Position numbers and translations under genes: made by a program
Assembly: GCA_037379345.1 (NCBI GenBank)
Contig: CM074524.1
Coordinates: 7,165,635-7,229,634, forward strand
Length of the DNA stretch: 64,000 bases
Reading direction: 5' to 3'
DNA from: Perna viridis
Taxonomy: Eukaryota
The notes under the pieces: model-generated
Told to the model about the DNA's origin: nothing
The model's database searches: none
The model's input: only the letters and a program-made list of their open reading frames with translations
Shown here: piece by piece, positions 1,455 to 28,518 of the stretch
Position numbering within the stretch: position 1 is the stretch's first letter
How the letters are laid out: every line of letters starts with the position of its first letter

Positions 1455-1592
1455 CCCAACCAAATAGGCTGCATTTTAACAGAAACTTGGAGAAGTAAGT
1501 ATTGTAAACTTTAATAAGAACAAGGTACATGTAGAATGCTTCAACTAACATCCAGCGGACAATATAACGTAGTGTAGAGATGCTGCAATGAT
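1455..1592 (-). pseudogene. aGPCR exon: TM3-TM4 (frameshifted)
   Basis: IIAASLHYVILSA / frameshift / WMLVEAFYMYLVLIKVYNTYFSKFLLKCSLFGWG|gtgagt; no AG before ATC ATT. Confidence 0.88.
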
Positions 1593-2509
1593 ATTTATAT
1601 AATCTGTATATCTTCATTTTTTTATATTCTAACATCTTTCACGTTGTGACTAGTTTTTCGTATAATAATTCTAGATTTACACATGACAGAGTTATCTCCC
1701 TTTGTCCACCATTTGCGTAGGTATATTTATATAGCCACAATAGTGAAGATCAAGTCTTATTTTTTACTAAATTATTTCCTGACCAAATTTTACACAATGT
1801 AGAGGTTGATTTTTAGCTGAATTTGATACGTATCCTCGAGGTCATATTTTTGTCTCATCCGATATAGAAACATATTTTGACAAAAACACAGAATAAATAA
1901 ATTTCCCCATTGATCCTATGTTAAAATAACTACCGACAAGGCAGATTACTCTTGCATTATGCTTTAATTATGTCTTGTGGCCCCGGCATGTGTAAATAGG
2001 GAATTGCTTTTTGAAGAAAGCAATTATGTCAAAACAATAGAAATGACAGTGTTTCCTACCAATTTCTGAAAATAATGAGTACGCTATTTTTTTTAACACT
2101 AAATGTCTTGTATAATTTTAGTAGTTTCATTTTGATTTGTTATATATTATCTACGATCTAGAATTTGTAGCAGTACAAAATTCAAGAGCCCTTAAATATT
2201 AAGGCTCAACTCATTGTAATGTTATTTGTAATAATTCTCGATTATGGATCATGGATTTGGCATTTGGCTTCTTTTTCCGAATTTGTTTTCTTTGAGTTTT
2301 CCATTTTTCGGTTTATCATTTTCACAAGACTCAAATCGACCTCCTTCCCCCTTTTTTCTTAAAGTGGATTTAAATTTAAACTCGTTTTCAGGTCATTTGA
2401 AAATAACGGGAAATTACAAATCAACGGGTAATTTTCGAGGTGAATATGTGCCTTATTTAATTAACTTGCTTTTGTCAAATAGTTATGTTAATGCAGATGC
2501 GTTACATAC

Positions 2510-2633
2510 CTTACAAAATATATCATGGTTGACCGCATGTTTCTGAATACCAATCAAAAATATAACGTTTGTCATTGCCAAAACAATACACAAATTGATC
2601 AGTATCTTTGATGGGGGTTTTCTCCGCAGTTTC
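2510..2633 (-). pseudogene. aGPCR exon: TM2
   Basis: gttgcag|G KLRRKPPSKILINLCIVLAMTNVIFLIGIQKHAVNHDIFCK|gtatgt. Confidence 0.9.
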
Positions 2634-2698
2634 CTGCAACAATTTGTTTAAAAACATAAATATTTGGAAGGACTTCACATAAGGACAAAATAACATTT

Positions 2699-2785
2699 AA
2701 AGAATAATCAATGGAACCAAAGGTTATAGTGGTAATCAAAGGAAGGTTATCTAGGGACAAAGACCAAACATGGAAAACAAACATA
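2699..2785 (-). mobile_element. PLE 3' end fragment (diverged)
   Basis: gaataatcaatggaaccaaaggttatagtggtaatcaaa..gggacaaagaccaaacatggaaaac. Confidence 0.7.
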
Positions 2786-3403
2786 TTTATGTAAATATAT
2801 AAATATTCTTTGTCAAAATTCATTAAAAAGGAAACATGAAACAAATAACATAAATAATACGACAGATGACATAATATAGAGGTATCTTACTTAATAAAAA
2901 CGACTGTATTTACCAATAGATGAAACAAACGTCAACTCTGGTATGTTGTTTGAGTATCGCAGAAAAGAAATGATAGACATAAGAGTATTGTACTCTTATA
3001 ATAGAAATTTTATATAAAGGTATATATTTTTCTTAATACTGTGCCCTGTCTGCATGTTGACCTATATATTTAAACAAAACGTGTTATTCTCGATAGATAA
3101 GGTTGCAGAGGTCGTATACGTATCATGCGAAACTTTTAAAATTAAATGTCGAAAACAACTTAAATGGATCACATGCAAAGGTCACCTTATGGTTGCACAA
3201 AAAAGGTAAAAAATTATATTTTTTTAGGAATGGTTCATAAGAATACATACATCCTGAAATTTGATTATCAACTTTTTTAGCAATACATTGCCAGTGTTTT
3301 TCGCTACATTCTAGCACTATAGGTTCTTATTTTAAATATTGATTTCAAAAATGTAATGTCGTTATCTCCTGTTTTCTCTATCTTTGGTGATTTAACTAAT
3401 AAC

Positions 3404-3591
3404 AGAGTAATCAAGGGAAACAAGATTCTAGCGGAAATCAAAAGAATGTAATCCAGGGACGAAGACCAGATATGGAAAACACATCAAAAGTATTAAATAA
3501 CAAATAAATACATAGAAAGGAACAAACGTAAATGAATAACTCAGACTCTGCTATAAACTGGGAGCATGGATAATGTGCACCGGTAGGGTAG
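3404..3591 (-). mobile_element. PLE 3' UTR copy (diverged)
   Basis: agagtaatcaagggaaacaag..ctgggagcatgga..gtgcaccggtagggtag. Confidence 0.8.
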
Positions 3592-3645
3592 CTACATAAA
3601 TAAATATTTTATGTATACTAATGAATGCAATGCACGTGTACTCAC

Positions 3646-3762
3646 CTGCGTGATTAGAGTGAGTACTAACCCCAGTAGAGATACACCACAGCCAATATAG
3701 GATATAAACGTCAAGGCCGCACGGTTTGCATTGCTCAACCTATTTCTAGTCTGATAAATATC
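3646..3762 (-). pseudogene. aGPCR exon: TM1
   Basis: aaacag|DIYQTRNRLSNANRAALTFISYIGCGVSLLGLVLTLITQ|gtgagt; ends in phase 0 whereas the next exon needs phase 2. Confidence 0.9.
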
Positions 3763-5553: not shown

Positions 5554-5703
5554 CATCAGTAACGCAAAATTTGTGAAATGGTTGCATTCACAGTACGTGT
5601 GACTACCTGGCATATGGTTTGTAACATTACATCCCCCGGTTGACCACACAAGATCTGACGCACCCTTTGTAACGATGTAAGCGCATTGTGGATTGTCCGA
5701 ATT
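5554..5703 (-). pseudogene. aGPCR exon: GPS motif and Stachel
   Basis: ttgttttag|NSDNPQCAYIVTKGASDLVWSTGGCNVTNHMPGSHTYCECNHFTNFALLM|gtaatt; 150 bp, phase 0-0; not in the ORF track. Confidence 0.93.
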
Positions 5704-6425: not shown

Positions 6426-9151
6426 CTTGAAATGTTTGAATCTAAACACTACGGGGTACTGAAGGTTCCTTACATCTGTTTTCTGTAAAATGGCAGATAT
6501 GACCAGTCCGTTTACTTTATTTGGTGCATCTACGTTGGACGTCGATAGGTTAGTGTCGTCTATAACCTGTCACAAAAGGTTAGAACACTGATCCCATTAT
6601 CTATACAGAATAAACAACTTTTGAGATGTGTATAATTTCATATTTTCACAAAAAAAACTCATTTTTGATTACTTTGTTACATTATTAAATAAAGTTTACA
6701 TTATTACATTCTTCTGCATTTTAGTGTATTGTCTTTTCTCAATTGAAATCTAACTGTGGAATCTAAAACGCTTTTCAACCAATTTCCAAATTATTTGCAT
6801 TCAAATTCTCCATCCCAATGTGAAATAACCATTTTCTGTCCTTCGACTTATTATAGAAAGGAAAGGAGATGCGGCGATAAAGGGTCTTATTGGCCTAAAA
6901 TGCAACTGAAAATCATAAAGTGTTGAATGGTTTAATAGTGAATTTACAGACTTTAATCCATCAGAAAGGAGAAAACATAAAGACTTTTCTGTGAAACCAC
7001 CATTTTAAAAGTATCGTTATTTTCTTTAAATTGGCAGCTACAGAATTAACTGAGTATTGAAAAAATGAAGTTTTGATTTATTTCTTAGATTTGAAATCAT
7101 GCAAATCTCCCGTCAAGAATACAAAATTTGCAAAAAATGTTCTACTTTTTAATACATTTGAAAGACATTATTATCATGAATTAAATGTTTAAAACATTTT
7201 TGTCATTTCAAGTTCTTTATTATAATATTCATATTTAATAATTATTTTTACAAACAATTGTTAGGAAACGTATTAAAATGAATTCGTAAACCTATTCAGT
7301 TGTGAAGAAAAAATTAGCGATGAATAACAAAACCATGACACATCCACATATAAGACTCTCTTTCAACAAAATACTGAAGGAATAATATTTTCATACAGTG
7401 GATGTTAAGGATTGTGTTATCTTTCACGAGTATAAGAAATTCAAGTCTTTGTTCGCGAGTGGAACGTAGCCTAACTAATAGAACGACCAATCGTTTCTCA
7501 AATTCGTGAAAGATAACTTGATCTTTGATCTTCAATTAGTATAAGCACCCATTTTCACTTGCAACTTGAATACCAATACTAACCGTGAATAGTTTAGTGT
7601 TACTATATATAGCAAATGCAAACTTCGATGATGTATTCAGAGTTGTATCAAAAATTGAAGATGGAACCACTACGCCAGAGTCCAGAGCAGAGATACCATC
7701 TCCTTCCTTAATTTCTATCTTTGAAAAAAAAATTAAACGTTATAACTGCAACTGCGTACCTATTTTGATAGGAGAGGTAAATCTATTGGTACAGATTTAA
7801 TGCCTATGATTCAAATTCAGCAATAACTCTTAATTTACTGAATTATGTTTCGTATTTATTTTGACATGTTACATTGCAATTTATTAATGTCTCATGAAAC
7901 ACGGGGTAAGTGTATCAACCGTCCGTGCAATACTCGTAAGAGTAGCAAAGGACGTTAAAAACCCTTAGTACAGGGAAAGAAACTCATCGATACATAATAG
8001 TTTCATGCTTATGATTCAATTTCAGCAAGAAATCAAAATTAAAAATCAAAATTATTGTAATTATGGGTTTCAGGAACAATTTGTTTTAATGAGTAACCGA
8101 GTTATTTTTTATCATGTCCTGAATCTTTTTTTTAAATGCTACTGTTAACAAAGGGCATATTAGACACCAGGAAAACCACTTTCGTAGAATTTCTTGGTGC
8201 AAAAGTTGGCTTTCTTTTTCGAATGTGTTGGTTTGAAATTTAGTGTAAACAATTGATTTTAACTTTGCATTTCGTTCTTATCCTGCAGATGAGGGATGAC
8301 TTCTTGAAACACGTGTACGGCACACCAAAATGTATCATATTTATATATTTGGTGTTTTTGTATTGAACCCGTTAATTATCAACTTCTGAATATGATCACA
8401 CCATTGAACCCATATAACGAATAAGGTTTATATATCCATACCTTATCTGTTAATGATGTACCAGCCTTCAATATTGCATTAACGATAACTCCATTAAATC
8501 TATTAGGATCCGTTTGTCGAACAAGTAGAGCAAGATTTTCATGAACAACAGAGAAGTTATCGCTAGATGTAGCAATATTATTGGCGAGAATGTTCATTGA
8601 AACTGACCACCTCTTTGCAGACGTACTTAATGTGGTGGACCTAGGGGAAGGGACATAACTCTTTAATTTCGGTGATATGTTTGTATCATATTCAATTTCA
8701 CCAAAGCCTATTAAGCTTTCGTTTGAAACAGAACGAAATCAGTCCAAGTTAGTTTGATGCTTACATAAGATTTATGTAAATTGCTGATTACAAACGTTCC
8801 AATGATTTGTAAGAGTTGTGTCCCTTACTCTAGGTCTACCTCCTTAATACTAAAAGTAATCATATTTTTCTCATATCATCGTTTACTTTAAATCAGATAA
8901 AAACACAAAGTGATATTAACCTTTCAGATGATTAGTTTGTTTTTTTTTTTTAGAAATTGCATCATCTCGAAGGTTGAGTAAATTACTCAAACTTTCGACC
9001 ATTTCCTCAATCATTGATTTATTCGAAAATACAGATTTGTCATCTAAAATATGTTCTATAACATTCAAAGATAAGGACACATCAGAACTAGTGAATTGTG
9101 GTGACTCTTTTGTGAGCAACAGCAAATCTATCTGAACATTGGCTGCATTGG
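6426..9151 (-). pseudogene. aGPCR exons 9151-8921, 8610-8442, 7718-7584, 6566-6426: GAIN domain
   Basis: ..FTSSDVSLSLNVIEHIL..MVESLSNLLNL.. | ..NFSVVHENLALLVRQ.. | ..VVVPSSIF..FAFAIYSNTKLFT | ..VNGLVISAILQKTDVRNLQYPVVFRFKH; frameshift at the end of 9151-8921 and no in-phase GT after 6426. Confidence 0.85.
8631..8843. mobile_element. ~212-bp MITE, TTAA-flanked (Kolobok-like termini)
   Basis: Imperfect ~32-bp TIR GGAGGTAGACCTAGGGTAAGGGACATAACTC / GAGTTGTGTCCCTTACCCTAGGTCTACCTCC, TTAA on both sides. Confidence 0.85.
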
Positions 9152-9605
9152 CTGTAAAACAAATTAACTTTTTTAACAAAATGCCATTCTTATAAATTAA
9201 TAAATTGGAGCACAAACTCACTCAGTTTTTAAGCTATAATGATTAAGACAAATCGAATTTTATGACTATGACAAAAATTCTATAATCATAAACATGACCT
9301 TCTGTGACTTTAGAATTTCGTAGAGGATTTGACACCTCATCAATCATTTATTATTGACACCTCATGGAACTTTTCTATTTCTTCTTATTAAAGCAAAGAT
9401 CTTTGCTTTTACGACAATGGTTTCTTATTTTTAGGTATAGAGTAGCAGATTCGAAACATGTTTCATGACCATCGAAAGTACAGATACACTTATAAAAAAA
9501 ATAAATCGGAGACATACAAATTTGAAAATGCTTTTTATTGATTGCGTGTGCTTGCATGTTCTATGTCATACATTTTATGATTTTAAGGCCGGTACCTCTT
9601 ATTAA

Positions 9606-10206
9606 TCTATCGAAACTGCTTTGTTACTTGTCTGACGCGCTAAGCAACATCCTGCAGCTAAGAATGTAACTTGGATACTCCATCTCAAAGCCAACTAGTC
9701 GTCATCGATCGAACCTGCTTTGTTACTTGTCTGACGCGCTAAGCAACATCCTGCAGCTAAGCATGTAACTCGGATACTCCATCTCAAAGCCAACTAGTCG
9801 TCATCGATCGTACCTGCTTTGTTACTGGTCTGACGCGCTAAGCAACATCCTGCAGGTAAGCATGTAACTCGGATACTCCCTCTCAAAGCCAACTAGTCGT
9901 CATCGATCGAACCTGCTTTGTTACTTGTCTGACGCGCTAAGCAACATCCTGCAGCTAAGCATGTAACTCGGATACTCCCTCTCAAAGCCAACTAGTCGTC
10001 ATTGATCGAACCTGCTTTGTTACTTTTCTGACACGATAAGCAACATCCTCTAGGTAAGCATGTAACTCGGATAGTCCTTCTCAAAACCATGTAGTCGTCA
10101 TCTATCGAACCTGCTTTGTTACTTGTCTGACGGGCTAAGCAACATCCTGCAGGTAACCATGCAATTCGGATACTCCCACTCAAAGCCAACTAGTAGTCAT
10201 TCTATC
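9606..10206. repeat. 99-bp x 6 tandem array
   Basis: Unit atcgaacctgctttgttacttgtctgacgcgctaagcaacatcctgcagctaagcatgtaactcggatactccatctcaaagccaactagtcgtcatcg; register points 9608, 9707, 9806, 9905, 10004, 10103. Confidence 0.95.
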
Positions 10207-10723
10207 TCCGGAGATGAAGCGAATACCAATTTTATAGTGTACAAATTATGTACCTCCCACCCTGCAATCACGTTACCACGAGAACAAATAGCAGTTACTA
10301 AGCACCACTCTGAGTAAGAATCAGGCAATGAATGGCACATATTGTTGCTCAATTTGATCTTTTATTCCTCAAATACATTCAAAACATCTTTAAAAACAAC
10401 CAAAAAAGCTATTTATTTATTTCCCGAAGCATCAATGACTTAGACATTTGTTTTACTGCTTCAATAGGGAAAAGGTACGGGAAAATTGTTCCGCTTTTTT
10501 AAAGTTCATTTCAACAAAATTTGACCTATCAATATCTAAGAAGACAAACGTTTCAAAAAATTAAATGGTTATTTTTGGTAATGTAATTGAATAATGCAAT
10601 AAAACATCTGCAGTTATTTTTCTTCGTGTGCCTCACCTTATACACAGTTTGCCTGATCTTTAGAAAGAGAAGTGCTTAAAGTGTTCTTTTCTACATTGTA
10701 ATATATCATTATATACATATTAC

Positions 10724-12374
10724 TGCTAGTTACGTTAGTCTTTGAAAGATTCTCCAAAGTCCTGGTGTAAATGCTGTTATAAGGACAACCGGAATAATCT
10801 GGCACTCCCCATTCAGCATTGCTGGCATTTTCCATCATGCTGAAACTAAACAAATATATTGGAATGAATTACCTTAGTAACAGGATTTTAGAAAAAAAAT
10901 AGTTTGTAGAATCTCACTGCTACATCTGATTTTTCTTAAATGCAGAAAACGCTATGATTTAACGAGGCGACGATAATTCTTCTTGACATGTGTATTTTTG
11001 TAGCTATTTCTCACATTTAAACTTTTCATGGTTTGGTAATTCAGAACAACCTCAATGTTATTATTTTCTTTGTTTATTTTTTCTTTATATTCCATTTAAG
11101 GAGGTAGACCTAGGGTAAGGGACATAACTCGTGAAATCAGTGATATGTTTGTATTATATTCAATTTCACCAAAGCCTATCAAGATTTCATTTGACACAGA
11201 ATGAAATCAATCTAAGTTACTTAGATCCTTATATGGCATTGATGTAAAATGCTGAATACAAACGTTCCAATGACTCTTAGGAGTTGTGTCCCTTACCCTA
11301 GGACTACCTCCTTAAAAACGGATTTTGTATGTATGTTTGTTTTTTTTAAACATTGAAATATAGAAGGTGTTAAAATAAACTGTTATCTTCTAAGCAACCA
11401 CAAGGTTGCATTGTAATTCAAGTAAGAATATCTGATGTATATACCACATCTGTCTTTTTATATTAATGGGTGGCTAACATAAGCTGCATGTATTATGTAT
11501 GATGTGTCATCATATGCTTATAATTATGGTGATTGGTATAAATCTTGTATTTCTGTATTCAGTAATGATATTAACATAAAACATTGGACAAGTTCTCTTG
11601 TCAATATGGGGCTCCCGAATTTAATTATACATGTATTTTTGAAACATTTTACAATTGCAAGAATCTATGACTGTGTATAATCTGTGAAATAAGACAAACA
11701 ACTATTATGCTCATACATTCCTAAACCGACTGTTATCAAATATAGCTGGACCATTTTGGTATACTATAACAATAAACATCACAATTTGAAAAATGGATTC
11801 ACACAGAGTAAGACCTAGTGTTCATTACGTACACGTCTCGTCTTTTAAGGAAGAATCTGGCAAACTGGAAATAATATGAAATGTATACGCCATAAACCAA
11901 CAGATCCGACAAGAAATATCACGCATTGAAGTATGCTTCTTAACACAAAATTGCCACTGTTTGAGCTTTGCATAACATGTATATATGTTTTACATTAGAA
12001 CTTAAAAACTCAGAGTTTTGGAAAGACATGTGCCCCTTAAATACTCGTTCGAAGAGCATGTCTGGGAAATTACTTCTTTCTTTAATTATATAAAAGATTT
12101 TACTTTCGTTTCTTGATGTGAGTGTAACGAGAATAAGTATGGTGAATTTGTCAAAGAGAAAATAAAATCAACGCGATGAAAATGTCAGCCCAAGGCCACA
12201 TATTGGTCTTCAATGAACCACGAGGGAAAAAACAATAACATATTTACCACTTTCTGATTGCAAGAAATGCAAAATTGTTTGGGCAATCCACTGTTGCTGT
12301 TTTGCCAATATCAGTAGAAGGCCATTCAAATTCATCTTTGCTGTTATTGGTTATTTCAGAAGAACACTGCTGAT
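10724..12374 (-). pseudogene. aGPCR exons 12374-12248 and 10839-10724: hormone-receptor (HormR) domain
   Basis: DQQCSSEITNNSKDEFEWPSTDIGKTATVDCPNNFAFLAIRKC|MMENASNAEWGVPDYSGCPYNSIYTRTLENLSKTNVTS; canonical C..WP.T..G....C...R.C....W..PD.S.C. Confidence 0.88.
11100..11311. mobile_element. ~212-bp MITE, TTAA-flanked
   Basis: ttaa|ggaggtagacctagggtaagggacataactc...gagttgtgtcccttaccctaggactacctcc|ttaa. Confidence 0.9.
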
Positions 12375-12787: not shown

Positions 12788-13235
12788 AAAATGTAATGAT
12801 TACTTTGCATTGTCCTTTTTATCGTTTCAGTCCATTTCCTAATTTTTCACAGAAGACATCTACAGATACAAGGACGTTACACAAAATGCCCTTTCATTGA
12901 AATATTATTCAATTGGTTAATGCATTACACGCGTTCTGAAGTCTAAGAAGTACTCAAAATCAAAAATATTAAAATGGTAAACACTTTTGAGTGATATAAC
13001 TCAGCATTGCCGTAACATGTATGATCGAATGAACCCGAAAGGTTCTATATTTATTACCCAATAGTACAACATGGGTCTTTCCAATTCTGTATGAGGCCAA
13101 TTTTGGTAAACCATTGGTAATTTTGTCTTTGATATATTTGTCTTTGTATTCCTCTCGGGTCGTCAGGGCTATCTGAATGTCGACTACGACTCGTGGACCA
13201 CTGCATAAAACAAAGTAAGAGTAATAGTAATACAA

Positions 13236-13495
13236 TGAGAACCAAAAGTCTGACAGGAATTATAAAAATGTATTCCAGGGACAAAGACAGGACATGGGCA
13301 ATAGACACATACAATAGAAATATAGAATAACCAAAATGATACGAACAAAATAACAAAAGTAATTGAGCAACTCGGCCTTCACTCAAAAATGGGAGCATGG
13401 GCTAGGTGCATCGGTAGGGTAAACTTCATCTGACATACCCACAGAGTTGTTCGTAAAAAGTCAAGTTCGGAGTACACGAAAGAGGAAAGAAAATC
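13236..13495 (-). mobile_element. PLE 3' UTR copy (diverged)
   Basis: ccagggacaaagac..tgagcaactcgg..gggagcatgggctaggtgcatcggtagggtaa. Confidence 0.78.
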
Positions 13496-13941
13496 TATGA
13501 GACGTTGAACAAATGGTTTTTTTATGTTGTGATGAAACAATAAAAACTCAAAGTACCATAAGTATGGAGAAAGCTTCCAATTCTTTGGTATATGGGGGAT
13601 GGGGAATGGGAATGGTGTATAGAGGGATGGGGATTAAGGATGGTGTATGGGGGGACGGGGAAATTATTTTTAAACAATTTATTGATTTAAAAATATGTAT
13701 TAGATCTAGTTTAAAAAAACGCGTATCTTCAATTCAATTTGATAATATAACTATTTGATAAGAAATGTGCAATGGGGATTCTATGGGGATGGGATTTTTG
13801 AATGGGGGGGGGGGTTGTATATGGTAAATATGGGAGGCTTATACCATTCAAGAGTCGTAAACTTCAGAAATTGAAGCAGATTTAATGTAGCGACCAATTA
13901 TCTAGCACATTTTTCCTTTCCCCTTTCGTCCACCTCTGATT

Positions 13942-14745
13942 AGGCTGACTTTATAGCTGATCTGATCCAAAAGAAAGAATATCAATTAGCTAGATCCTTT
14001 AATCTCAGTTTCCGTTATATAGATGACGTATTATCTTTAAACAATCCTAGTTTCAGAGATTTGATACATTGCATCTACCCCAAAAAACTTGAGATAAAGG
14101 ATACTACAGACACTGTGAGGTCAGCCCCATATCTTGTCCTACACTTAGAAATCGATGGAAAATTGTTGACCAAACTTTACGACAAACGTGATGACATTTC
14201 ATTGAGAATTGTCAATTTTCCTTTCATCTGTGACAACATCCCTTCAGCACCTGCGTATGGAGTGTTCATATCACATCTTATACGTTATGCCAGAGCTTGC
14301 CGAAACAACGCAGACTTTTTGTATCGCGCAAGAATTCTAACAAACAGGCATCTGGAACAAGGTTTGTTGCTACAAGATTGAAGTCATCACTACAGAAATT
14401 TTATGGTCGTCATCATGAACTCGTGGATCGCTACGGATCCATCTGCGTTATGAAAACTGATTTGTTCAAAGGGTCATAGTTTTCCATTCACCGGAAATAA
14501 CTGTTTATTAGCAACTCGGCGGGTGTTTCTATAAAAGCAGAGGACGCTTACCCTACCGGTGCACGTGGTTTGCTCCCAGTTTTTAGTGGAGTCCGAGTTG
14601 CTCATTTACTTTTGTTACTTTGTATGTATGATTTTAATTACTTTATATTCTTTGTTGTGTATGTCTGTTTTCCATGTCTGGTCTTTGTCCCTAGATTACA
14701 CCCTTTTGATTACCACTGTAACCTTGGTTCCCTTGATTACTCTCT
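13942..14745 (+). mobile_element. 5'-truncated Penelope-like retroelement (RT C-terminal part + 3' UTR; Naiad-type layout)
   Basis: FRYIDDVLSLNN (YIDD 14016-14027), TKLYDKRDD..IVNFPFI..NIPSAPAYGVFISHLIRYARAC, then after a frameshift LKSSLQKFYGRHHELVDRY..TDLFKGS* with no C-terminal GIY-YIG domain; followed by the UTR shared by all short copies. Confidence 0.85.
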
Positions 14746-14759
14746 CTTATGTGTCATTT

Positions 14760-14930
14760 TATTAGCAACAAGGTGGGTGTATCTAGAAAAGCACAAGATG
14801 TACCTGTTCCATGCTCCTAGTTTGAGTGGAGTTTTGGTTACTAAATTAATTTTGTTGATTCCTTGTACGTGTTATTTTGGTTATATCATGGTCTTAGTTG
14901 TGTGTGTCTATATTTCTTGTCTAGTCGTTA
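14760..14930 (+). mobile_element. Older diverged PLE 3' UTR copy directly behind the RT copy
   Basis: tagcaacaaggtgggtgtatctagaaaagc...cctgttccatgctcctagtttgagtggag aligns to the family UTR. Confidence 0.7.
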
Positions 14931-17050
14931 AACCAAATTTTTATTAAACCAAAAACCTGTCTAAAACAAGACACATTCTTTCAGTCCAAATGTATTTTGA
15001 ACCTTGATGAACCGAACACCTGTCTAAATCGACCGAATTCTACAGTCCAAAAAGGATTCGATTAAAACAAGTTTCAGTTTATATTTTAAGTATTGATATT
15101 GTCTTTTTTTAAATGATTAGAACTCATAGTATTTTTAAATTGCAACCGATATTTATTCACAGCTTAAAATCGTCCCTTTTAAAAATTATACATTGTAAAA
15201 TGGTAAATGGTAAATTACACCTTGTAAGTGCTGTAACATATTATCAAATGTGATTTTTCTAAAACACAATCAAAGAAGGAGGGAAAGTCTTTTTCCAGTA
15301 TTTGGTGGAGTAAAAAAATATTTCACAAATTAGATCTTACCTTGTTTTCAAAAAAAGTAGATTCAAAGACTCCGAATGGCTGCGCAAGAATATTAAGGGC
15401 TCTATCAATCTGTAACAGTTTGTTTCTTTCTTATATGATTTGATAAATAAATCATCGTTTTTTCTATGCAATCTATTTTCATGAAAGACAGCGGTTTAAG
15501 GCATTGGGCTATGAAATCTGCTTGGAAGTATTCATTCGTAAATATCATAAATGTTCGGACAGAAATTGAACTGAAACGTGTATCAGTTACTTACACCAAA
15601 TATATTTGGCGCCTCTAAAATCATTATTTTTTCTATTGTTGTTTAATCCAATTTCAGTTGTAGTATGCATTCGGGGACAAGAGCGTCAGACCATTTACAC
15701 ATACCTTGTTTGGTGGTATGGTCGTTGAACTTGATTGATATTGTGCTACCACATATAAGCAATAGCAAGCAGGTAGCTATAGCCATGTCACTAAACTCCA
15801 TATTTAACCGACTCAGTCTACCACTCGTACATATGTAACTTGGCAGAAAAGCAGTGAATATCGATTTTAAGTCTTTTTTTTTAAACTTTAGTATCATCCT
15901 TTGAGATGATCAAGCTACCACAAGATCACCACCCCAAAGCAGTTTCTTTGAATTTTGAGCAATTGGAGATATCCACTCCCTCCGTTTGTCAGAAATTATT
16001 ATTATTATTATTATTTTATTTATTTATTTATTTATTTTTTGATTTTTATTAGAATTGTATCATGTCGAATGGGCTAACGTAACCATGGTAACGAAAACCC
16101 TTACCATTACTTACGTCATTTTCTATTGATATCTTAAAGGAGTCATTAACAGTATCTTCTGTTTCTTTTACTTCATTTAAATAAACATCGAGGTCAATGG
16201 TTGCCAAATATGTAAAACTGCACAGTCTATCTGAAATGGAACAGAAAATTAAATTTAAAGTTATAATTATCATTTCATCAAAAGTAACATAGCGTAAACT
16301 CTTCCCGTTTAAAAACAGAAATTTGTTGGGTTTTTGGTTGTTTTTTATTACATCTTTAGTATGTTCCTGGCTAAGTTCCATCTACAAAATTCCCATTATT
16401 TGGAACTGAGTGGACATGTTTAGGAATATTTTAACAAACCCATTAAAACGTGTTATTATATTTCATAATAATGTATCGATTTATATGTCATTTTATTTCA
16501 ACAGTGAATACGGATTCATCTGTTCGTCTATCCACATGTTTCCGCATCCAACTTATTCTAGAGAAGCAAGGAATACCATCCCTAGCTACCAATAAACTTT
16601 TTTGGTAATCAGATATATGTGCAAAAATGAATAATGAAACCTGAAATGTTTCAGTAACCATATTACTATAACATGATTATCAGATGATATTCACAATAGT
16701 GTATTTAAGTATCGTCATGTGACTCTGTGGAATCTACCATTCAAATGCAATGAGATTCGTCATTTATAGAGCCTTGAATTTAGTATTAAAAAAACATGTT
16801 CTGTGTAAAAATACCAATAAAATTGTCATTCTTTATTTCTACATGATACAAGTGTTCAGTGAATTTGCATTAAATTTAGGTCTGTCTACGGATTTCAATG
16901 CGTCTTACATCGGAAATTCCAGCCGGGAAAATTAAACTTTAACGGTTATAAACTAACCCTAGATGTTGTCTATTTGTCTGGTTTTACTTCCTTTCTCTAA
17001 ATATAGGTTCAAAAGACAATATTTATACGTAATTATCACGCAAGTCCTAC

Positions 17051-18294
17051 CTGAAAGAGCTTCTCTATTGCAGAGTGCACCAACACAGCAAAATCTACAC
17101 GATTTAGATTTATAACCACTCTAACATGTGTTTTCATTATTTCTCTCCACATTTAAACATTGTTTATAGTCTTGACAGCTTTATATATTCCATGTGAATG
17201 GTAGTTCTCAAACTTGATTTCCTCATAACAGACTGGCTAAAATGTGTAATAATATGAGAAAAGGAAATCATTTTCTTGTGTATAATTATAATTTTCTTCA
17301 AATTTTATCCTAAAATCTATACCGGATACAACTTAGATTATAACAATATACAACTTCAAACTTCTCATATAAATTTTGGAATTTAAGGATGATAAGATGC
17401 AGAACAAAATGTATCGCCAAGGTTGGTGAGAGTAAGACGATAAAATTACACAAAAAAAAAAAAAAAACACACAAAGCAAATGCTTTCCAAAGTACAACAG
17501 AATTAGAATTAGATCTCGAAAGCTGAATAAATTACCATACTTATTAAAAGAGAATACACAGAACAATATCAATACACTACTGACTAGATTAAAGAGTATA
17601 CAGAAAATAAATTAATAAATAAAGTAGCACATTATTGATGAATCATTGTATTCCAAGGAAGGCAACTCCAACATCTTTTGATTGAGACAGTTATATGAAA
17701 ATAGTAGATTGGATCAGAAAAAAGTCTCAGCTATGATCAATTTGCTCATAGAAAGAGTAATCAAGGGAACCAAGGTTATACCGGAAATCAAAAAATGTAA
17801 TCCAGGATTAAAGACCAGACATAGAAAACAGAAATACACAACAAAGAACATAAAGTAACCAAAATCATACATACACAGTAACAAAAGAAAATGAGCAACT
17901 CGGACTAAAAACCTGGGAGCATGGCCCAGGTGGTTCGGTAGGGTAGGCGTCCTTTTCTCCTTTTCTAGAAAACTAGAGTTGATGAATTTGATAATAAGTT
18001 TACACACTGAAGGGTTTTCATTAATGAACAACTAGGAAAGTTATTCTATAGAATTGTTAATAATATTTTATTGAGACATTTTCCTACTTCCTCCTTCCTG
18101 TTATTATCACATTTTGGACTTTGCAATGTTATTTAAATTTTTGCAGATTACAAAATGTCTAATATCCATTCTACTTATACTTACATTTGTGTACTCTGAT
18201 ACAGAACATTTTGTGAAACGATTTTGTTGTAAGCAATCCATCGTACTTGTTGCATTTTTACAACCTATACAGGTTGTATCTTTAAACAAATTAT
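17051..18294 (-). pseudogene. aGPCR exons 18294-18185 and 17236-17051: Ly6/uPAR (three-finger)-like domain
   Basis: TTCIGCKNATSTMDCLQQNRFTKCSVSEYTN|PVCYEEIKFENYHSHGIY/KSCQDYKQCLNVERNNENTC*SGYKSKSCRFCCVGALCN; CxxC...CCxxxxCN pattern; 1-nt deletion near 17181 and TAG at 17123-17121. Confidence 0.78.
17752..17972 (-). mobile_element. PLE 3' UTR copy
   Basis: aaagagtaatcaagggaaccaaggttata..atgagcaactcgg..ggtagggtaggcgtcc. Confidence 0.85.
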
Positions 18295-18796
18295 CTGTAA
18301 AATTAAGCACGAAAATAGTTTGTTTATCAACTTATCCACTCAATCTGAAAGACTAAGTTTTTTCAGTATGATTTTTTTATTGTAACTGTCGTAATTGTAC
18401 AAACATATTTAGTGGTAGTCTTTGTGGGAATCATGCAAATTCTGTAAAATGTGATGCCCCCCCCCCTCCATAAAATGTTTAGTTTTTCAATCCAATCTTT
18501 CTGCTCTTAGGTATAAATGCACATTGAAAATCCAATAGTTTCTATTGAATGTAAGTTACATATATAGATTACACTTCCTCAATTTGAAATTCTACAGTGC
18601 ATTTCATACAATTTCTATCTTTTATCAACAATGGTTCTATGAAAAGTCACAGTGCAATTTCCTGTTTACATAAGCATTTTAAACAAAATATAACAAATAC
18701 AAATATGTAGGCTTTCCAACAATGTATCCCATTTTGTATAATTCTTAGCTGGAGTGCAACTCAATAAGATATTCTTAAGACTCTGTAAAAACTTAG

Positions 18797-18938
18797 TATT
18801 GTGCATCAAGGGAGAAGATGTTAAATTCTTCATTTTCATGATAGATAACCAAAAACAAAATCGTTTGCTCTAGCACGAATTGCTTGTATAAAGGCCTTCA
18901 TCTCACAATCACATGTAAGTGGGTTATCAGTAAACGAT
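18797..18938 (-). pseudogene. aGPCR exon: LRRCT (frameshifted, donor lost)
   Basis: ttcatctag|A SFTDNPLTCDCEMKAFIQAIRARANDFVFGY, then TGA at 18838-18836; shifted frame reads YHENEEFNIFSLDAQY; the donor position reads ctaagt. Confidence 0.8.
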
Positions 18939-19074
18939 CTAGATGAAAACGCATGCAAAGAGATAATGATGAAAGTAGCTGTTTATTCAAATGCATGAAG
19001 TCTTTTTTTTTCTCATTTCTGTGGCAGAACGACCTATCTGCGTTGTAGTAAGTTGTGAAATTTAAATAGCAAGT

Positions 19075-19172: not shown

Positions 19173-19400
19173 TTCAGTAATTGTCATTTTTTTACATCGT
19201 GCATTTTGCCATGTGTTAAATCATCGGCAAAATACAAAGGGACAATCCAATGATACATTATAGGCCAAGCTTTGGCAAAATCATGAAAACAGAAAACTGA
19301 AATATGCATACACCAATATGATTAAAATCAAATCTCTAAATTTTTCCCCGTTTAATGACACGCGAAATATCTACCAATGGCTTGTTTTTATTTGTTGTTT

Positions 19401-19643: not shown

Positions 19644-19858
19644 GATTAGACTGTACATACGCAATATAGACAATAGAATAAGACAAAACTACATTTATAA
19701 ATTGAAGATAAAAAATAAATGTTTCAAAATAGTTTGCAATACTGTACAATATTGTCATATCATTTTAGATCATAAATTTATTCCTTACATTATTTCCAAT
19801 TTTACATACAAAATAAGTTTATACTATAAGTCATTTATGTATTTTTATTCCAACTTAC

Positions 19859-19930
19859 AACTTCTTCAACAGCGGTAGCCGGAAGATCAAATCCCGTTCA
19901 ATGGTGGCAGTGCTATTAAATGATATAAGA
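19859..19930 (-). pseudogene. aGPCR exon: degenerate LRR (72-bp footprint; usable acceptor gives 54 bp, 19912-19859)
   Basis: LISFNSTATIERDLIFRLPLLKKL|gtaagt; no AG at the 72-bp position, in-frame tttaatag 18 nt inside. Confidence 0.65.
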
Positions 19931-21196
19931 GAAAAAATGTTTGTTGCTCTTGAACATGTTGTACACTGGAAAGGGTGCAATGCATGTATATTATGTTTAA
20001 AATATGAAAGAGATACGTCAAATATGTGTATTTTCAAATATGCGATTTTCATGCGTTCGGTATTTACTGAAATACGTTTTACATGCCTTTGTCAAAACAC
20101 AAAATCAGGAACAAAAACATGAAAACATGTACTTTTACATTCGTTATAATTTTGTCTGATTGATGTATTTATAGGTCCGGAAAATATAAAACAATGATAA
20201 TAAAGAATTAGTTATTCTTACGAAGTACCTAATATTGTTAGCACATGGAAATGCAAAAAGTGTAAATACTTACGGGTTCGTTTTAACCTCATAATACACT
20301 GGGACAAATAGGGTTAATATTTATATAGTGTTATCGGTAAAATGAGTTCGTCCAAAGAAGTCATTCGAAAAAAACTACATGCATATGTTTGAAACGGTTG
20401 GATTTTATTGTGTCTTTTGACATGTTCCCCAATTCCAAATTGGAAAATGGACAGAATTAGGGTCATACATATGTTCAGCAATGTTTTCCGCACCCGGAAT
20501 ATGTCTTCGTCTGGCCCCAGAAATGAAAAATATATCGGATCAGGTATATCGAGAGATATAAAATATCTACATATTTATGTATCTGGAAATACTCTTATCA
20601 TAGAAAAAGAAAAAAAAATTAAAGATACATATGATCAAGAGATTAGCCATTCAAAGACAAAACATTTCAAGCGAGTCTACACACGGTCATCATATGTCAA
20701 AACGAGCACACTGACCATTCGTTGTTCTTCAATTGTTGTAGCATGAAAGATCTTATTAGATTTGAAATGGAAGCGAAGCAATCACAAATGCATAATTCAT
20801 TTTTTCCCTAAAACAAATACAATTTAGTTGCGTCATCAGATAATACATTAAGCTGCAAACATTGTCGTGCTAAGTATACCCCCACTCGTTATGCAAATGA
20901 ACAAATAGAAGATCGATATCAGATAGGAAAATCAAACCTCCCTCTTCCATTGCGGCCTAAATATACCAGTAGTGATTAAATAACATTTGCTAGCTATTGT
21001 GTCATAATTATTCAGTGGTCATACCAGTGTAAAGAATGATTTACAAAAAACAATCATAACTCGTGGTTTTAGAAGAAACTGAGTATTTTCAAACAAGGAC
21101 TGATATTTCGAATTGGGACGAAGGTATGGACGGATTTTGTGATTTTTATAAATGCCCATCTCGTTGAGAGGGCATGATATTTACTGTACTTCTTAC

Positions 21197-21268
21197 AAAG
21201 TCACTAAGAATGGAAGATAAACAAAAGCATAGGTCTTAATTTCAGTCAGCTTGTTCTCTTGAAGACTT
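21197..21268 (-). pseudogene. aGPCR exon: 72-bp LRR
   Basis: ttttttcag|A SLQENKLTEIKTYAFVYLPFLVTL |gtaaga; phase 2-2. Confidence 0.85.
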
Positions 21269-21841
21269 CTGAAAAAATTAATGCCACTTTCATATCGTGT
21301 ATACATCGAGAATCTGTTAAAGTTATACTTCTATTTTACAAGTTTGAAACATTGTTAATATGTAGGTTTTTTAATTGGAATCATATGTAATTGAGGTCAA
21401 TTAGATATCACAAACTCGAATGCTAAAGTAAATTCCATCCTTCCAACCCAAACCCTTATGAACCTCCAACAAATAAATACAAATACAAACAAACGAAAAC
21501 AGAAGACAAAAATAAATAATATGATATCTGAAATTTTCAAAGGACGACAGGATAATGAAAACATAATTGTTAGCTGCTAATTGTGGAATTTCCTGTTAAA
21601 AGTTAATTGTAAAGTGTTTTTGGATCATAACTATATCGTTATTATTATAAAATTACGTTTAAAAGGAGCAATATCCAATTAAAAGTGACGTAAGTTCCAT
21701 TGTGTATGAACTATACAATTTAGCGTATAAAACAAAATGTTGCATATATCGTGAAAATGGGAAACATGATTGAGACTAACTGTGAATGAATTAAGAATTT
21801 TCAAGTTTTATTCTTCAATGAAGTTCGATCGTAACTTTTAT

Positions 21842-22101: not shown

Positions 22102-22823
22102 ATTCAAAATGGGAAAAATACCAAATTAATTTAATCGGTACATGTCATTATATGTACACTTACAAAATTTTAAGATTAAACAACTTTTTAAATGCTCCAT
22201 GTGCAAGGAATTGTATAGCATTTTGCTGTAGATATCTGAAAGTTAAACAAAAAGTTTTTTAGGATATGCACTATGACAAAATAATTGCAACACATCATTT
22301 ATATCAATAATAGAATTAAAATTAAAAAAAAAACAATGTTTTTCAACAAATACAAATGCACTCGAGAAATGTGAAATAAAAAACAATCTTTGACGGGTAA
22401 CTCTCTGACATAGAAAGCATCAATGCACAAGTAATGGCATTTGCTTTACGATGCTATGTTGTAATATACAATAAGACTGATGAAACAGTAATAGGACGGA
22501 ATTTAAAGCTTAAGAGGCAGCCTTGGGGATGTCTTATATATGTCTGTTATGATAAGCTGGGTGTCGACCTTGATCAGACATTGAGTACCTTGTGTATGCT
22601 GGATGTATTTTAATATTTTAAACATGCACCGCAGATCACTTAATATTAGACTGAAATCAATTTCTCGGTCATTCTATTTAAAGATTTAAGGTCAAAGTCG
22701 TATAGATTGCCGGTTTGAGGGTTTCGTCATTGATGAGTCGTGAAAGACCAAATTTAAGATACACAATACATAAAAAATGTTCTTTATAACTAAACAATTT
22801 ACATAATGACATAGAATTTTTGA

Positions 22824-24673: not shown

Positions 24674-24831
24674 ATTTATAAGAATTGGCTATAATAAAAA
24701 TTTTGTCTATTGAAAAATAACATATTTTTCATTTGAATATTTTATACTTCGCTCAATAAAAAAATATGCACTCGGAAAATTTATGTTATTTTTCGATAGA
24801 CAAAATTTTATTATTGCCAATTCTTATAAAT
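24674..24831. mobile_element. Foldback MITE
   Basis: atttataagaattggctataataaaaattttgtctattgaaaaataacata... and its reverse complement ...tatgttatttttcgatagacaaaattttattattgccaattcttataaat. Confidence 0.8.
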
Positions 24832-25275
24832 AATGTAGAGAAGTTAAAATAGAAAGCGACTTGTCTTCTGACAATTGATGATATTCAGAGTTATAATAAA
24901 AAAATTTACAAAAGAAGTCAATTTTGATTCATTCGGTAAACAGCAGATTTTGCTGAAAACATGGATCAGAGCAAAGCCATACATGGATTAGTGTGAAGAA
25001 GAATATATTTCATACTCTGAAAGTCAGGAAAGTGGGTTTAGAGTAACAATACAATCATAGGTACTCCCTTGATGATGAAATTAAAATACATGAACTTCAT
25101 TTATATCTTGAATTTCTGACAGTTCAAAAAAGAAATAAATGCCATGTATGTATTTCAGATAACACTTTGACTGTAGCTTTGTTGATATTCGTTATTGTCT
25201 TTTTACAAACCATAACTTATTACTGGATCAAGGAACAAGAAATCAATACACCTTTAAATTCAAAATTGTACTTAC

Positions 25276-25347
25276 AGTGCTTTGAGGATTCCAAGTCCGT
25301 GAAAACTTTGACCTTCTATAGTTTTTATATCATTCCGACTTAAATCC
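25276..25347 (-). pseudogene. aGPCR exon: 72-bp LRR
   Basis: ttttgcag|G DLSRNDIKTIEGQSFHGLGILKAL |gtaagt; phase 2-2, exactly one 24-aa LRR. Confidence 0.88.
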
Positions 25348-26288
25348 CTGCAAAATTTATGTGTGTTTAATCATATTGTTTACAAAGAAAACAGCTCTGA
25401 ATGATTTTAGCCTTTTACAATACCTGAATGGTGCGAGCTTCTCACTCATTGGTATATGAGGCAAAAAGGGATTGGCCCTTGGAAACGAGATCTTTGGTAT
25501 TCAGAAAATGTAGTAATTTGGCTCATAAACAAGCTATTTTTTTAAATTAATTTAGTAAAATGTAATTCAGTATACTCTTTATTATGTATGTGTGGATATT
25601 GAAAATTAATGTGGTACGGGTCATGGTGGATGGATAATAAGTGATATGTCATGGGACAATTAGGGATTGGGTATTGAGGCATGCAGCATAGAAAATGCGA
25701 CTGTGGGAGAATGGAGATGTTGGAAGTTAACCTCATATAAGATCTGTTACAATGACAGTATCAAAACAGAACAAAACGTCATACCAAAAAGTCTAGAAAT
25801 TACCAAAAACCCTCAAGTTATGCACTCGTTCTCCGTTTCCACTTTGGATCATGAACTGATGAGTTTTGGTATCATATCTAAATTTTCATTTTGTAAGGAA
25901 ATTCATGATTTGAAAGAACCACGAAAACCCCAAAAATTGTACCCCATAGTTTTGTTAATACATTCAGTGCAGTTAATTAATTAAAACGTAACTATTTTCG
26001 TTGGATTCAGTAAGAGCTGAATAAAAAGATCTTATGAACAACAAATATAAACAATCTGTTGAAATATCCGGTGATTCCCTAGACTTTCAAAGCACCAGGG
26101 ATAACACTCATTTTTATAAGGGTTCGTACTGATTCTAGTTTGGATTTCTGTTGTTTCATACGCTTCACTTTCGTATGTGTGTCATTTTTATTGTTTCCGA
26201 TGGTGTTTGTTTCAAGGATTGTGTACAATCGGTAATGATACGTTTTCTAATTACGCGTGATAGTTGAATATTGTGTAGATACATTTAA

Positions 26289-26478
26289 GGAGGTAGGCCT
26301 AGACTTAGGGACATAACTCTTGAAATCAGTAATAATTTTGAAACATGTTAAATTTCATCAAAATCTGTCAGTCATGCATTAATACCAAAATCAAATCGAT
26401 CTTAGTTACATAGATGGTTACATGAGATTAATGTAAAATTTGTGTACATAAATTTTCCAATGATGAGTTATGCCCCTA
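26289..26478. mobile_element. Diverged partial copy of the TTAA MITE
   Basis: ttaa|ggaggtaggcctagacttagggacataactc..gagttatgcccct. Confidence 0.75.
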
Positions 26479-27589
26479 TTTTCCAAACATTAACAATGGG
26501 GGTTACGCTATGACACGTTAAAAATGATACATTTCAATATAATTTTCAATTTTTGATTAAATATAGCTTAATATGCTCAATCTACAACTGAAAATAACGT
26601 CCTTGGTAAAAAAAGTTATTATTTCAGTTTTTAGAAATGAATCTATTGCAATCTTTTTAGAAAATCTTCTTTGCGTTGAAACTGTGTTTTCAATTGGTTG
26701 TAATCGTTATTCTTTAAAAAAAATGAACATTTCAATAATTTAAACCTCCACTGCATTTTCACAAAATGAAAATTCTTCGTATTCAGTGGAGGAAGTTTGA
26801 ATAAAAGCTAACTCTGTACTAACAAAATTTTTGTACCTAAATCAAAGGCTAACAAAACGTCGTCTTTTAACATCAACCAATTAGAGATGATGTCGTTATT
26901 GTAAAAAACAATATTTTGTATTAATTGCAAACTGTTATTTTCTATTATGGTTTTCAACATGTTAACTAAAAACTGCAAAAAAACTTCATTTTTTGCCTTT
27001 CAAGGGCAACCACTCTAACAAGTAGTCGTGTGTTTTGATACAACTTTAGTGATGTATATCATAAAACATAATTTAGGATAAAAAAGTGAAATAGTTATTT
27101 TTACAAAATCGGAAAAATATACTGTAAATTTGTGACATTTATACCACTAGAACATTGGTGTCCTTGAATACTCTTCAAGAACTTCCTTGAGATATGTTTC
27201 GATTTCAAGTTTAAAATTACTTTTTGATATAAATGAAAATAACCTGTCATTTCTTTGTGCAATTGTCTAAATAATCGAAAGGGCACCAAATTATCAAATA
27301 AAAAAAAATGTATATTGTCTACTTGCTGGAGAGTATTGCAAAAGTTATATGACCCAATGAAATACGCGCTGTCAGCAAGCTTCCCAACAATACTTTTATT
27401 TTAAAAAAATTAATTTTGTATTATTGCATTGATAGTTAAATTTATATAAAGTTTTTTTTATTTTTAAGAAAGATTGTATTGTGTTTTATATTAATAATTT
27501 TCAAGTTTCAACTTTTTATGTGTTCTTTTATGATAATATAAATAATGATGATTTATAAACGCCCCCCAAAAAGCAACCATCAATACTGT

Positions 27590-27810
27590 TATTTTAAAGG
27601 GGGCGAACAAAAAATCCCGGCTCAGTTTACCTGGCATTAAAAGACAAACTACTCTAGTATATCCTAAGAACATTCATTCCAATTTGAATTTCAATCCATC
27701 TGTTAGTTTTACATGAGAAAATATTTGAACATCAATTTAGAGACGACAATTCACAACTGACGCCAAGTGATGGCATAGCTCATATACCCTTCGACATGGT
27801 AAGCAAAAAT
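27590..27810 (+). mobile_element. Helitron/Helentron-derived non-autonomous element 3' end
   Basis: gacgccaagtgatggcatagctcatatacccttcgacatggtaagcaaaaat resembles the subterminal hairpin end of bivalve HINE-type elements (recognised from memory, not searched). Confidence 0.5.
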
Positions 27811-28300
27811 AAGTTTGAGCAATTAAATAAGGAAACTTAATTACTTTTGATGTCGATACTAATATCTCACCCACATGATACTGTTTAATTTACAGTCAAA
27901 AGCAACAGTTATTTAGTTTATCGGTAACCCAACTTTTTTAATTTTTAATCGCTTTGATGTACATTCAGTTCATGGGCTACTTTTGTTGCACACAACTTCT
28001 AGAAGTGCGGCTACACGCAGTTTATGCGTTATGGCATTTTCAAAACTCTAAAGAAGGTTTTAAGAAATTACAATCCCTCCAAATGTTTTGACCGATATTT
28101 TCGAATATATTGTCATGTACGAGAGATACAGACTTTTCTGTCACTAAGATATAAGGGACAAAGTACAAAATAGCCGCAATCTTTTTTGATTGAAATAGTG
28201 CAAAAGTGAGCTGAGAATTGTATTTGATAAATTATACATGGTTAATGGTAGGAATCTTCTAGTCTGAATACAGAAATTGCAATTCTTATATTAAACTTAC

Positions 28301-28518
28301 AGAGTAGAAACATTTTGTTGAATTCCCACTGGTACTTTTGTCATCGACTTTTCTTTACAGTCGACCTCCAGTTGGTTATTGTTGAATGTACAATTACAAT
28401 TTGGACCTGAATCGTTAGTACACAAGTCCACAGCCTGTACCTGTTGTGCAGAGATCATTAACGAAATCATTATCCAAGCATCCGATGTCAATAGAATGGT
28501 ATAACCGACTTTCATCAT
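28301..28518 (-). pseudogene. aGPCR exon 1: signal peptide + LRRNT
   Basis: MMKVGYTILLTSDAWIMISLMISAQQVQAVDLCTNDSGPNCNCTFNNNQLEVDCKEKSMTKVPVGIQQNVSTL; phase-2 donor CT|gtaagt. Confidence 0.85.

Follow-up and report, generated by a model that had tools for sequence, protein, structure and literature searches.

The stretch of DNA analysed here, called the window in the following, comprises 64,000 nucleotides of Perna viridis and corresponds to C14:7165635-7229634 of a genome of 723 Mb with a G+C content of about 31%. Its minus strand carries a chain of short exons, which starts with an ATG at position 28518 and extends down to about position 1450. The exons correspond to an adhesion G protein-coupled receptor (GPCR) with an extended ectodomain, and the comparison with related loci described below indicates that the window likely harbours a decayed fifth copy, i.e. 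a pseudogene, of a molluscan family of such receptors.

Intact members of this family comprise, from N- to C-terminus, a signal peptide, LRRNT, about five LRRs, LRRCT, a cysteine-rich module of presumed Ly6/uPAR (LU) type, a SEA-type region of about 105 residues, HormR, a Ser/Thr-rich linker, GAIN/GPS, and a domain of seven transmembrane (TM) helices (7TM). For the assignment of domains, exons were searched singly, one at a time, and homologues from databases as whole proteins. A direct reading of the sequence confirmed that the four boundaries named in the original prediction for this DNA (18294, 17051, 16230, and 13058) are true AG/GT splice sites with the correct phases. The exons of the window copy are given below in the order of transcription; identity values refer to four paralogs, among these a tandem pair designated C14a and C14b.

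28300-28518, minus strand: exon 1 with the start ATG, the signal peptide, LRRNT (four Cys), and the start of the first LRR, ending in a phase-2 GTAAGT donor (Pfam LRRNT, 20.4 bits, E 3.8e-4; 47-58% identity to four paralogs)
25275-25349, minus strand: LRR exon a, one repeat of 24-25 residues (Pfam LRR_8, E 9.5e-4; kept in all four paralogs)
22163-22237, minus strand: LRR exon b (tblastx, 72-75% identity to paralogs C14b and C14a)
21196-21270, minus strand: LRR exon c (63-70% identity to paralogs)
19858-19929, minus strand: LRR exon d (tblastx, 50-53% identity to paralogs)
18790-18940, minus strand: LRRCT exon, 5' half with the CxC motif conserved, 3' half degenerate (three-frame reading against the intact paralog exons, DNA alignment)
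18185-18294, minus strand: LU exon A with CxxC and two more Cys, phase-1 acceptor and phase-0 GTAAGT donor, intact (44-51% identity to four paralogous exons)
17051-17236, minus strand: LU exon B with eight Cys and the CCxxxxCN end, phase 0 to 1, disrupted (sequence reading against paralogs)
16115-16230, minus strand: SEA-like exon 1 (strand 1, helix 1), phase 1 to 0 (same structure in paralogs; tblastn, 37-40% identity)
15327-15409, minus strand: candidate SEA-like middle exon (strand 2), phase 0 to 2 (scan for splice sites and phase, scored across four loci)
13059-13200, minus strand: SEA-like exon 3 (strand 3, helix 2, strand 4), phase 2 to 1 (tblastn, E 3e-9 to paralog C14b)
12250-12374, minus strand: HormR exon 1, phase 1 to 2 (Pfam HRM, 22.5 bits, E 1.6e-4; splice sites read)
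10716-10839, minus strand: HormR exon 2, whose first base finishes the Cys codon opened in HormR exon 1 (42-53% identity to paralogs)
8949-9152, minus strand: GAIN subdomain A exon (Pfam GPR128_GAIN_subdomA, 24.6 bits, cutoff 22; 60-64% identity to paralogs)
8442-8594, minus strand: GAIN exon (52-61% identity to paralogs)
7581-7709, minus strand: GAIN subdomain B exon (50-58% identity to paralogs)
6432-6566, minus strand: GAIN subdomain B exon (53-63% identity to paralogs)
5554-5703, minus strand: GPS exon, containing the cleavage motif CxCxHF/T and the first part of the tethered agonist, TNFALLM (Pfam GPS, 46 bits, cutoff 22.5, E 7.8e-12)
3646-3762, minus strand: remainder of the tethered agonist and TM1 (Pfam 7tm_2 positions 3-35; 74% identity to paralogs)
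2507-2635, minus strand: TM2 exon (Pfam 7tm_2 positions 29-63; 58-67% identity to paralogs)
1453-1592, minus strand: exon of TM3 and the start of TM4, disrupted (Pfam 7tm_2 positions 94-126; DNA alignment)

The score of the half-domain HormR exon lies below the Pfam HRM cutoff of 26.2 bits, and four family members match HRM at an E-value of 0.0097 or weaker; the four cysteines, the conserved tryptophan, and the CP motifs of HormR can be read across both exons. The tethered agonist, TNFALLM followed by DIY, is read across the exons 5554-5703 and 3646-3762, likewise in the protein XP_060084150. The weakest part of the gene model is the candidate SEA-like middle exon, whose donor is uncertain: a strong AAG/GTAAGA site at 15341 is out of phase. 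A further candidate LRR exon at 24789-24884 was dropped, as a counterpart exists in none of the four paralogs.

Both LU exons, A and B, have four further copies each in the genome. For the comparison with these paralogs, 40 kb were fetched around each copy of the LU exons:

C14:5.19-5.28 Mb: two tandem paralogs (C14a and C14b), intact-looking
C6:37.79-37.82 Mb: paralog, intact-looking
C6:41.91-41.97 Mb: paralog with very long introns, intact-looking

Together with the window, these are five collinear loci with the same exon order and strand: LRRNT, LRRs, LRRCT, LU-A, LU-B, SEA-like exons, HormR, GAIN, GPS, and TM1-7. This collinearity of five genome copies places the exon set far beyond chance, and intact-looking paralogs do exist elsewhere, as the original prediction had expected. 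The four intact LU-B exons were combined into a profile, which was compared with 1.84 billion representative proteins and matched 23 of them. Among the long matches are RefSeq models of Ylistrum balloti, Saccostrea cucullata, and Octopus bimaculoides and a GenBank model of O. vulgaris; they are named 'adhesion GPCR G6-like' or 'G2-like' and contain Pfam matches to LRR, GPS, and 7tm_2. A word-based search of proteins, for which residues 190-520 of the scallop homologue served as query, added the Pecten maximus orthologue; apart from this orthologue and the query itself, it found nothing. Read directly, the order in the homologues is LRRCT, 12-Cys module, a region of about 105 residues, HormR, Ser/Thr-rich linker, GAIN/GPS, and 7TM. 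In paralogs and homologues, a complete 7TM domain follows the GPS, with 7tm_2 matches of up to E 1e-50. A search of the PDB with the alignment of the whole family gave a list dominated by LRR proteins and adhesion GPCRs; among the 60 matches listed, the best solved relatives of the 7TM/GAIN part were ADGRG2 and ADGRG6. Judged by these sequences, the family is spread over at least bivalves and cephalopods, and is not as narrowly lineage-specific as had been proposed.

The combination of LRR, Ly6-like, SEA-like, HormR, GAIN/GPS, and 7TM parts in one architecture, the core of the original prediction, is borne out by the five loci and the mollusc homologues, and the splice sites read show that introns of phase 1 flank the LU as well as the SEA module, as predicted. 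We consider it extremely improbable that two neighbouring genes, one encoding the LRR-LU half and the other the SEA-HormR-GAIN-7TM half, have been merged here. Such a split would find some backing in octopus RefSeq models consisting of LRR and LU only ('slit homolog 1-like'), and the three RNA-seq runs mapped to the window gave no reads on its exons. Against this, order, strand, and matching intron phases are alike at all five loci; LU exon B is not followed by a stop or a terminal exon, and SEA exon 1 is not preceded by a start or a signal peptide. Moreover, both halves are joined in models of five molluscs (Ylistrum, Pecten, Saccostrea, Octopus bimaculoides, and O. vulgaris). The LRR and GAIN halves thus belong to one gene family, since the same order is found at five loci and in the full-length mollusc models; the finding that would have overturned the predicted architecture, namely that the halves are separate genes, was looked for in the paralogs and homologues, and the opposite was seen.

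The octopus models deserve a separate remark. A cluster of 13 Octopus sinensis isoforms named 'slit homolog 1-like' and the database protein P0013 have the order LRRNT-LRR-LRRCT-LU and lack GAIN and 7TM. They may result from incomplete gene models or represent genuine isoforms of the family, secreted or short.

In the window copy, the exon chain is damaged at several sites. The 3' half of the LRRCT exon contains an in-frame TGA near 18841 and indels; both distal Cys codons and the GT donor are gone. LU exon B has a deletion of one nucleotide at 17178/17179 and a TAG at 17123-17121, a site occupied by tyrosine in the paralogs. The DNA alignment with the paralogs revealed in the TM3 exon a 7-nt deletion near 1550, which shifts the frame into a stop, and the replacement of the acceptor AG. 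After the GPS, the window copy offers only TM1, TM2, and the frameshifted TM3 with the start of TM4 instead of a complete 7TM domain. The second half of TM4 is encoded by an exon of 26 residues (TM4b), of which the genome contains only four copies, all located at the paralogs. An exon for TM5-7 was not found within the 21.5 kb following the TM3/TM4 exon of the window. This exon has five close copies in the genome, the fifth of which, at C14:8636968-8637363 on the plus strand, is intact and open including the tail. It lies 1.47 Mb from the window on the opposite strand, and within 30 kb upstream of it other family exons are absent; TM4b was found neither beside the window nor beside this orphan exon. 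Probably, the orphan is the displaced last exon of the window gene, separated from it through an inversion of about 1.47 Mb or through a scaffolding error of this size. A simple inversion is a possible cause; the TM4b exon is missing at both ends, and N gaps are absent at both putative breakpoints (the window end and C14:8.637 Mb).

Owing to the lost LRRCT cap, the stop in LU, the frameshift in TM3, the missing TM4b, and the displaced TM5-7, the window copy would be unable to make a receptor, and very likely it is a pseudogene. The same lesions qualify the earlier description of the locus as a set of phase-consistent exons: the minus strand does contain the modules where they had been placed, but the damage in LRRCT, LU-B, and TM3 and the partial TM4 break the phase. 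Of the proposed segment consisting of a signal peptide, LRRNT, three LRRs, and LRRCT, the LRRNT, the repeats, and the 5' half of LRRCT are there; however, the single-LRR exons number four and not three, and the 3' half of LRRCT is degenerate. The pattern of a 12-Cys CxxC...CCxxxxCN module exists, but can be read in the window copy only through a frameshift and the TAG. HormR, GAIN/GPS, and TM1-4 were recovered by Pfam exon by exon, with the reservation that TM3 is frameshifted and TM4 only half present.

Several observations weigh against decay of the window copy. The base missing at 17178/17179 (a C on the plus strand) is present in the DNA contig of an independent individual (run X3), so the frameshift in LU exon B reflects either a mistake of the assembly or a polymorphic indel. 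The window copy has retained open frames in most of its exons, with identities of 50-85% to the paralogs, and any decay is therefore recent or partial. The displaced TM5-7 exon could stem from a scaffolding inversion and not from evolution. For these reasons it is conceivable, if rather improbable, that the locus is a working receptor gene. In this case, its lesions would be errors of the assembly or be avoided by splicing, and a scaffolding inversion of some 1.47 Mb would have misplaced its 3' exons. The orphan TM5-7 exon would suit such a gene: it is fully open, it shares 68% identity with paralog C14b, a divergence comparable to that of the other window exons, and five LU exons genome-wide stand against five TM5-7 exons, which fits a one-to-one relation. 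Likewise, skipping of both LU exons would preserve the frame (phase 1-1). A working gene needs, however, several unlike and independent errors, namely the TAG substitution, the 7-nt deletion, the lost acceptor, the LRRCT indels, and the lost donor; in addition, neither breakpoint carries an N gap, and a TM4b exon for the window copy is absent near both breakpoints and elsewhere in the genome. The check based on reads covered positions 13040-19039, and the LU frameshift is the lesion contradicted there. The contig of run X3 matches the LRRCT region bar one substitution; for the TAG at 17123-17121 no difference is listed in it, one contig difference not being displayed. Three RNA-seq runs, whose reads were mapped to the same interval, gave zero depth on the LRRCT, LU, and SEA exons. 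These runs stem from unspecified tissue and were sampled to about 20-25%, so that an adhesion GPCR restricted to nerve or sensory cells could escape. On balance, we regard the window copy as a pseudogene.

Within the mapped interval, nearly all RNA-seq depth (up to about 200) falls on high-copy interspersed intronic repeats at about 13840-14840 and at 17640-18040, which also have a huge DNA word depth; many reads continue into unrelated sequence at 14365, 14430, 14571, and 17751. At 16640-16839, all three RNA runs show a strand-biased depth of about 10, and practically all reads carry T>A at 16751. The signal resembles a transcript of another, nearly identical copy, or a small transcript from the intron itself. 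A tandem array (9605-10200) of six 99-bp units with 91% matches, which constitutes on the minus strand a repeated open unit of 32 residues, is located in the intron that separates HormR exon 2 from the GAIN subdomain A exon. Outside the receptor locus, positions 57307-57540 consist of 234 consecutive N, which represent an assembly gap or a masked stretch.

In the intact paralogs, the cysteine-rich module is encoded by two exons (phases 1-0 and 0-1) and contains 12 Cys, with CxxC at the start and CCxxxxCN at the end. Paralogs and homologues show the complete LU cysteine framework. In LU exon B of the paralog at C6:37.80 Mb, two of the eight Cys are missing, which form exactly one pair, and the second finger contains an insertion of 11 residues. 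The loss of exactly one pair in one paralog fits an extra, dispensable disulfide. An open reading frame derived from Logan is identical to exon B of this paralog.

Based on the sequence comparisons, we interpret the module as very probably a divergent LU domain. The exon-B profile matches the protein KAJ8019844 of Holothuria leucospilota at E 3.5e-5 across the 1.84 billion proteins, and a local hmmsearch resolved four domain matches, which are the four 12-Cys repeats of this protein and align Cys for Cys; the first repeat scores above the Pfam gathering thresholds of CD59 (48 bits) and Toxin_TOLIP (39 bits). When exon B of the paralogs was searched alone, Pfam gave UPAR_LY6_2 at E 0.015-0.046 and 14-16 bits (cutoff 31.5) and Activin_recp at E 0.022 and 16.1 bits (cutoff 20.9). 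These weak matches come from three paralogs, all belong to the LU clan, and each covers the expected C-terminal portion of its profile. KAJ8019844 itself has an unusual LU architecture: mucin-like, Thr-rich linkers separate its four near-identical 12-Cys LU repeats, and a Cys-rich stretch follows at the C-terminus; in UniRef it is named 'Apple domain-containing'.

For the fold, AlphaFold2 models were computed of a scallop fragment and of the octopus protein, using alignments of 30-37 rows; fragments of exon A and of the SEA exons from the host genome were left out, as they were misaligned when added. In the LU module, the N-terminal half has a predicted local distance difference test (pLDDT) score of 30-50, and the rest, consisting of a hairpin, a helix, and a strand, reaches 57-76. 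The module might, with a small probability, be another disulfide-rich fold that shares the CCxxxxCN ending by chance, and a number of results speak for this and against an LU domain. On exon B, no curated LU profile scores above its threshold, and LU is absent from the Pfam families of the 37 family members. Three-finger proteins are absent from the Foldseek lists of both models and from the VIA-wide list of the octopus model, the pLDDT of the module is low (30-65 for the LU part of both models), and the PDB search with the exon-B profile returned nothing relevant. The helix predicted after the central hairpin may also be counted on this side; LU domains of the CD59 type do possess a helix at this place. 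What such a chance likeness leaves unaccounted for is the Cys-for-Cys alignment to four repeats, the first of which is recognized by two LU families, and the agreement of three paralogs on the LU clan; furthermore, a survey with hidden Markov models reports LU domains in GPCR-like proteins of molluscs (PMC13719153). A search of the ESM Atlas with the LU region gave one unnamed cluster at 0.75, which is uninformative, and Pfam found nothing in the window's own LU and SEA exons. We therefore retain the interpretation as a divergent LU domain.

The SEA-like region is encoded by three exons with the phases 1-0, 0-2, and 2-1. In both AlphaFold2 models (scallop and octopus), it appears as a unit of about 105 residues with the order beta-alpha-beta-beta-alpha-beta, i.e. 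a ferredoxin-like fold, at a pLDDT of 64-85. The Foldseek matches of this part include SEA domains of MUC16 at E of about 0.02; the other matches are generic ferredoxin-like structures. It counts against a SEA domain that Pfam SEA matches none of the family members. Many SEA domains, though not all, contain a GSVVV autoproteolysis motif or a furin site; when the paralogs and XP_060084150 were read, neither was seen in the region of the loop between strands 2 and 3. As modelled, the region is compatible with SEA in its position and fold, the fold in question being the generic ferredoxin-like one. A precedent exists in Gpr126, whose SEA domain, located directly before HormR-GAIN, was missed by sequence methods and found by structure (PMC6954182).

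Among known receptors, a close parallel to the family is vertebrate ADGRG6/GPR126, which has the order CUB-PTX-SEA-HormR-GAIN-7TM (Leon et al. 2020, PMC6954182). Both share a core of a SEA-type ferredoxin-like domain, HormR, GAIN/GPS, and 7TM; in both, the SEA or SEA-like part is invisible to sequence profiles and revealed by structure. The tethered agonist is of the TxFAxLM type, and ADGRG6 is, with ADGRG2, the best solved relative. In contrast, the head of the family consists of LRR and LU and that of ADGRG6 of CUB and PTX; a mucin-like linker follows HormR in the family, and the loop between strands 2 and 3 differs by the furin site or GSVVV motif not seen there. Given LRRNT, LRR, LRRCT, and LU in the place of CUB and PTX, the family is by its domain content not an ADGRG6 orthologue. 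Vertebrate ADGRA2 and ADGRA3 (GPR124/125) are built as LRR-Ig-HormR-GAIN-7TM. The family resembles them in the N-terminal LRR block with LRRCT and in HormR and GAIN further down, but contains LU and the SEA-like region where ADGRA has Ig; moreover, its 7TM domain matches the G-subfamily best, and an ADGRA chain is absent among the 60 PDB matches listed. With CD59, Lypd6, and the ectodomains of activin/BMP receptors the module shares the CxxC start, the CCxxxxCN end, and the length of about 90 residues. It differs from these LU proteins by having 12 Cys instead of 8-10, and by residing inside a multidomain 7TM receptor and not in a protein that is secreted or anchored by glycosylphosphatidylinositol.

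The mollusc RefSeq models with 'G6-like/G2-like' names (XP_060084150 of Ylistrum balloti, isoform X2 of Pecten maximus, XP_062597425 of Saccostrea cucullata, and XP_052827273 of Octopus bimaculoides) belong to the same family and have an identical domain order. They are 35-60% identical to the copies of the host genome; the window copy is broken, unlike these models. Their automatic names omit the LU and the SEA-like parts, both of which Pfam misses. An expansion of adhesion GPCRs in octopus ('group 3'), some members of which have LRRs and which is expressed in axial nerve cord, suckers, and skin, has been described by Ritschard et al. (2019, PMC6408891); compared by description only, the octopus branch of our family is probably this group. 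GPCR-like proteins with an LU domain have been reported from starfish (LyAr2, XP_033635539.1; Lyukmanova et al. 2024, PMC11595613) and from molluscs and arthropods (Acta Naturae 2026, PMC13719153), where a figure legend lists LRR, LU, GPS, and 7TM GPCR. Their LU domain, too, is part of the ectodomain at the N-terminus of a 7TM receptor, and the family is likely identical with the mollusc receptors of PMC13719153, again compared by description.

These three publications indicate that this kind of receptor is already known. Given the two on GPCR-like proteins with an LU domain and the existing RefSeq models, the original prediction, which knew of no described adhesion GPCR with a Ly6/uPAR domain, is not supported on this point. 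In the searched text of PMC11595613 and PMC13719153 GAIN is absent, and GPS is absent from that of PMC11595613; SEA and HormR were not among the terms searched for in these papers. In the literature searched, we did not find stated the core of SEA-like region and HormR, the parallel to ADGRG6, the family of five loci, or the decay of the window copy.

In intact members, the LRR-LU head may bind a partner, and the SEA-HormR-GAIN stalk may work as it does in ADGRG6. Cleavage at the GPS, between H-L/F and T, would expose the tethered agonist TNFALLMDIY, which would then switch on the 7TM domain and its G protein. Only tentatively do we go one step further and suggest a mollusc-wide family in which an ADGRG6-type SEA-HormR-GAIN-7TM core is combined with an LRR and LU head, whose full architecture has not been described and in which LU serves as a built-in module for ligand binding or self-regulation.

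The overall significance of these findings is modest. For the annotation of the genome, they mean that the window locus should be flagged as a pseudogene and that the four paralogs should be named LRR-LU-SEA-HormR-GAIN adhesion GPCRs and not just 'ADGRG6-like'. If the octopus homologues are the group described by Ritschard et al. (2019, PMC6408891), the intact genes would be reasonable candidates for sensory or neural adhesion signalling. With respect to LU biology, the family would be among the few cases of a three-finger-type domain within a 7TM receptor. For receptor biology, it would represent a natural swapping of heads on an ADGRG6-type stalk, with LRR and LU in exchange for CUB and PTX and with modules bounded by phase-1 introns.

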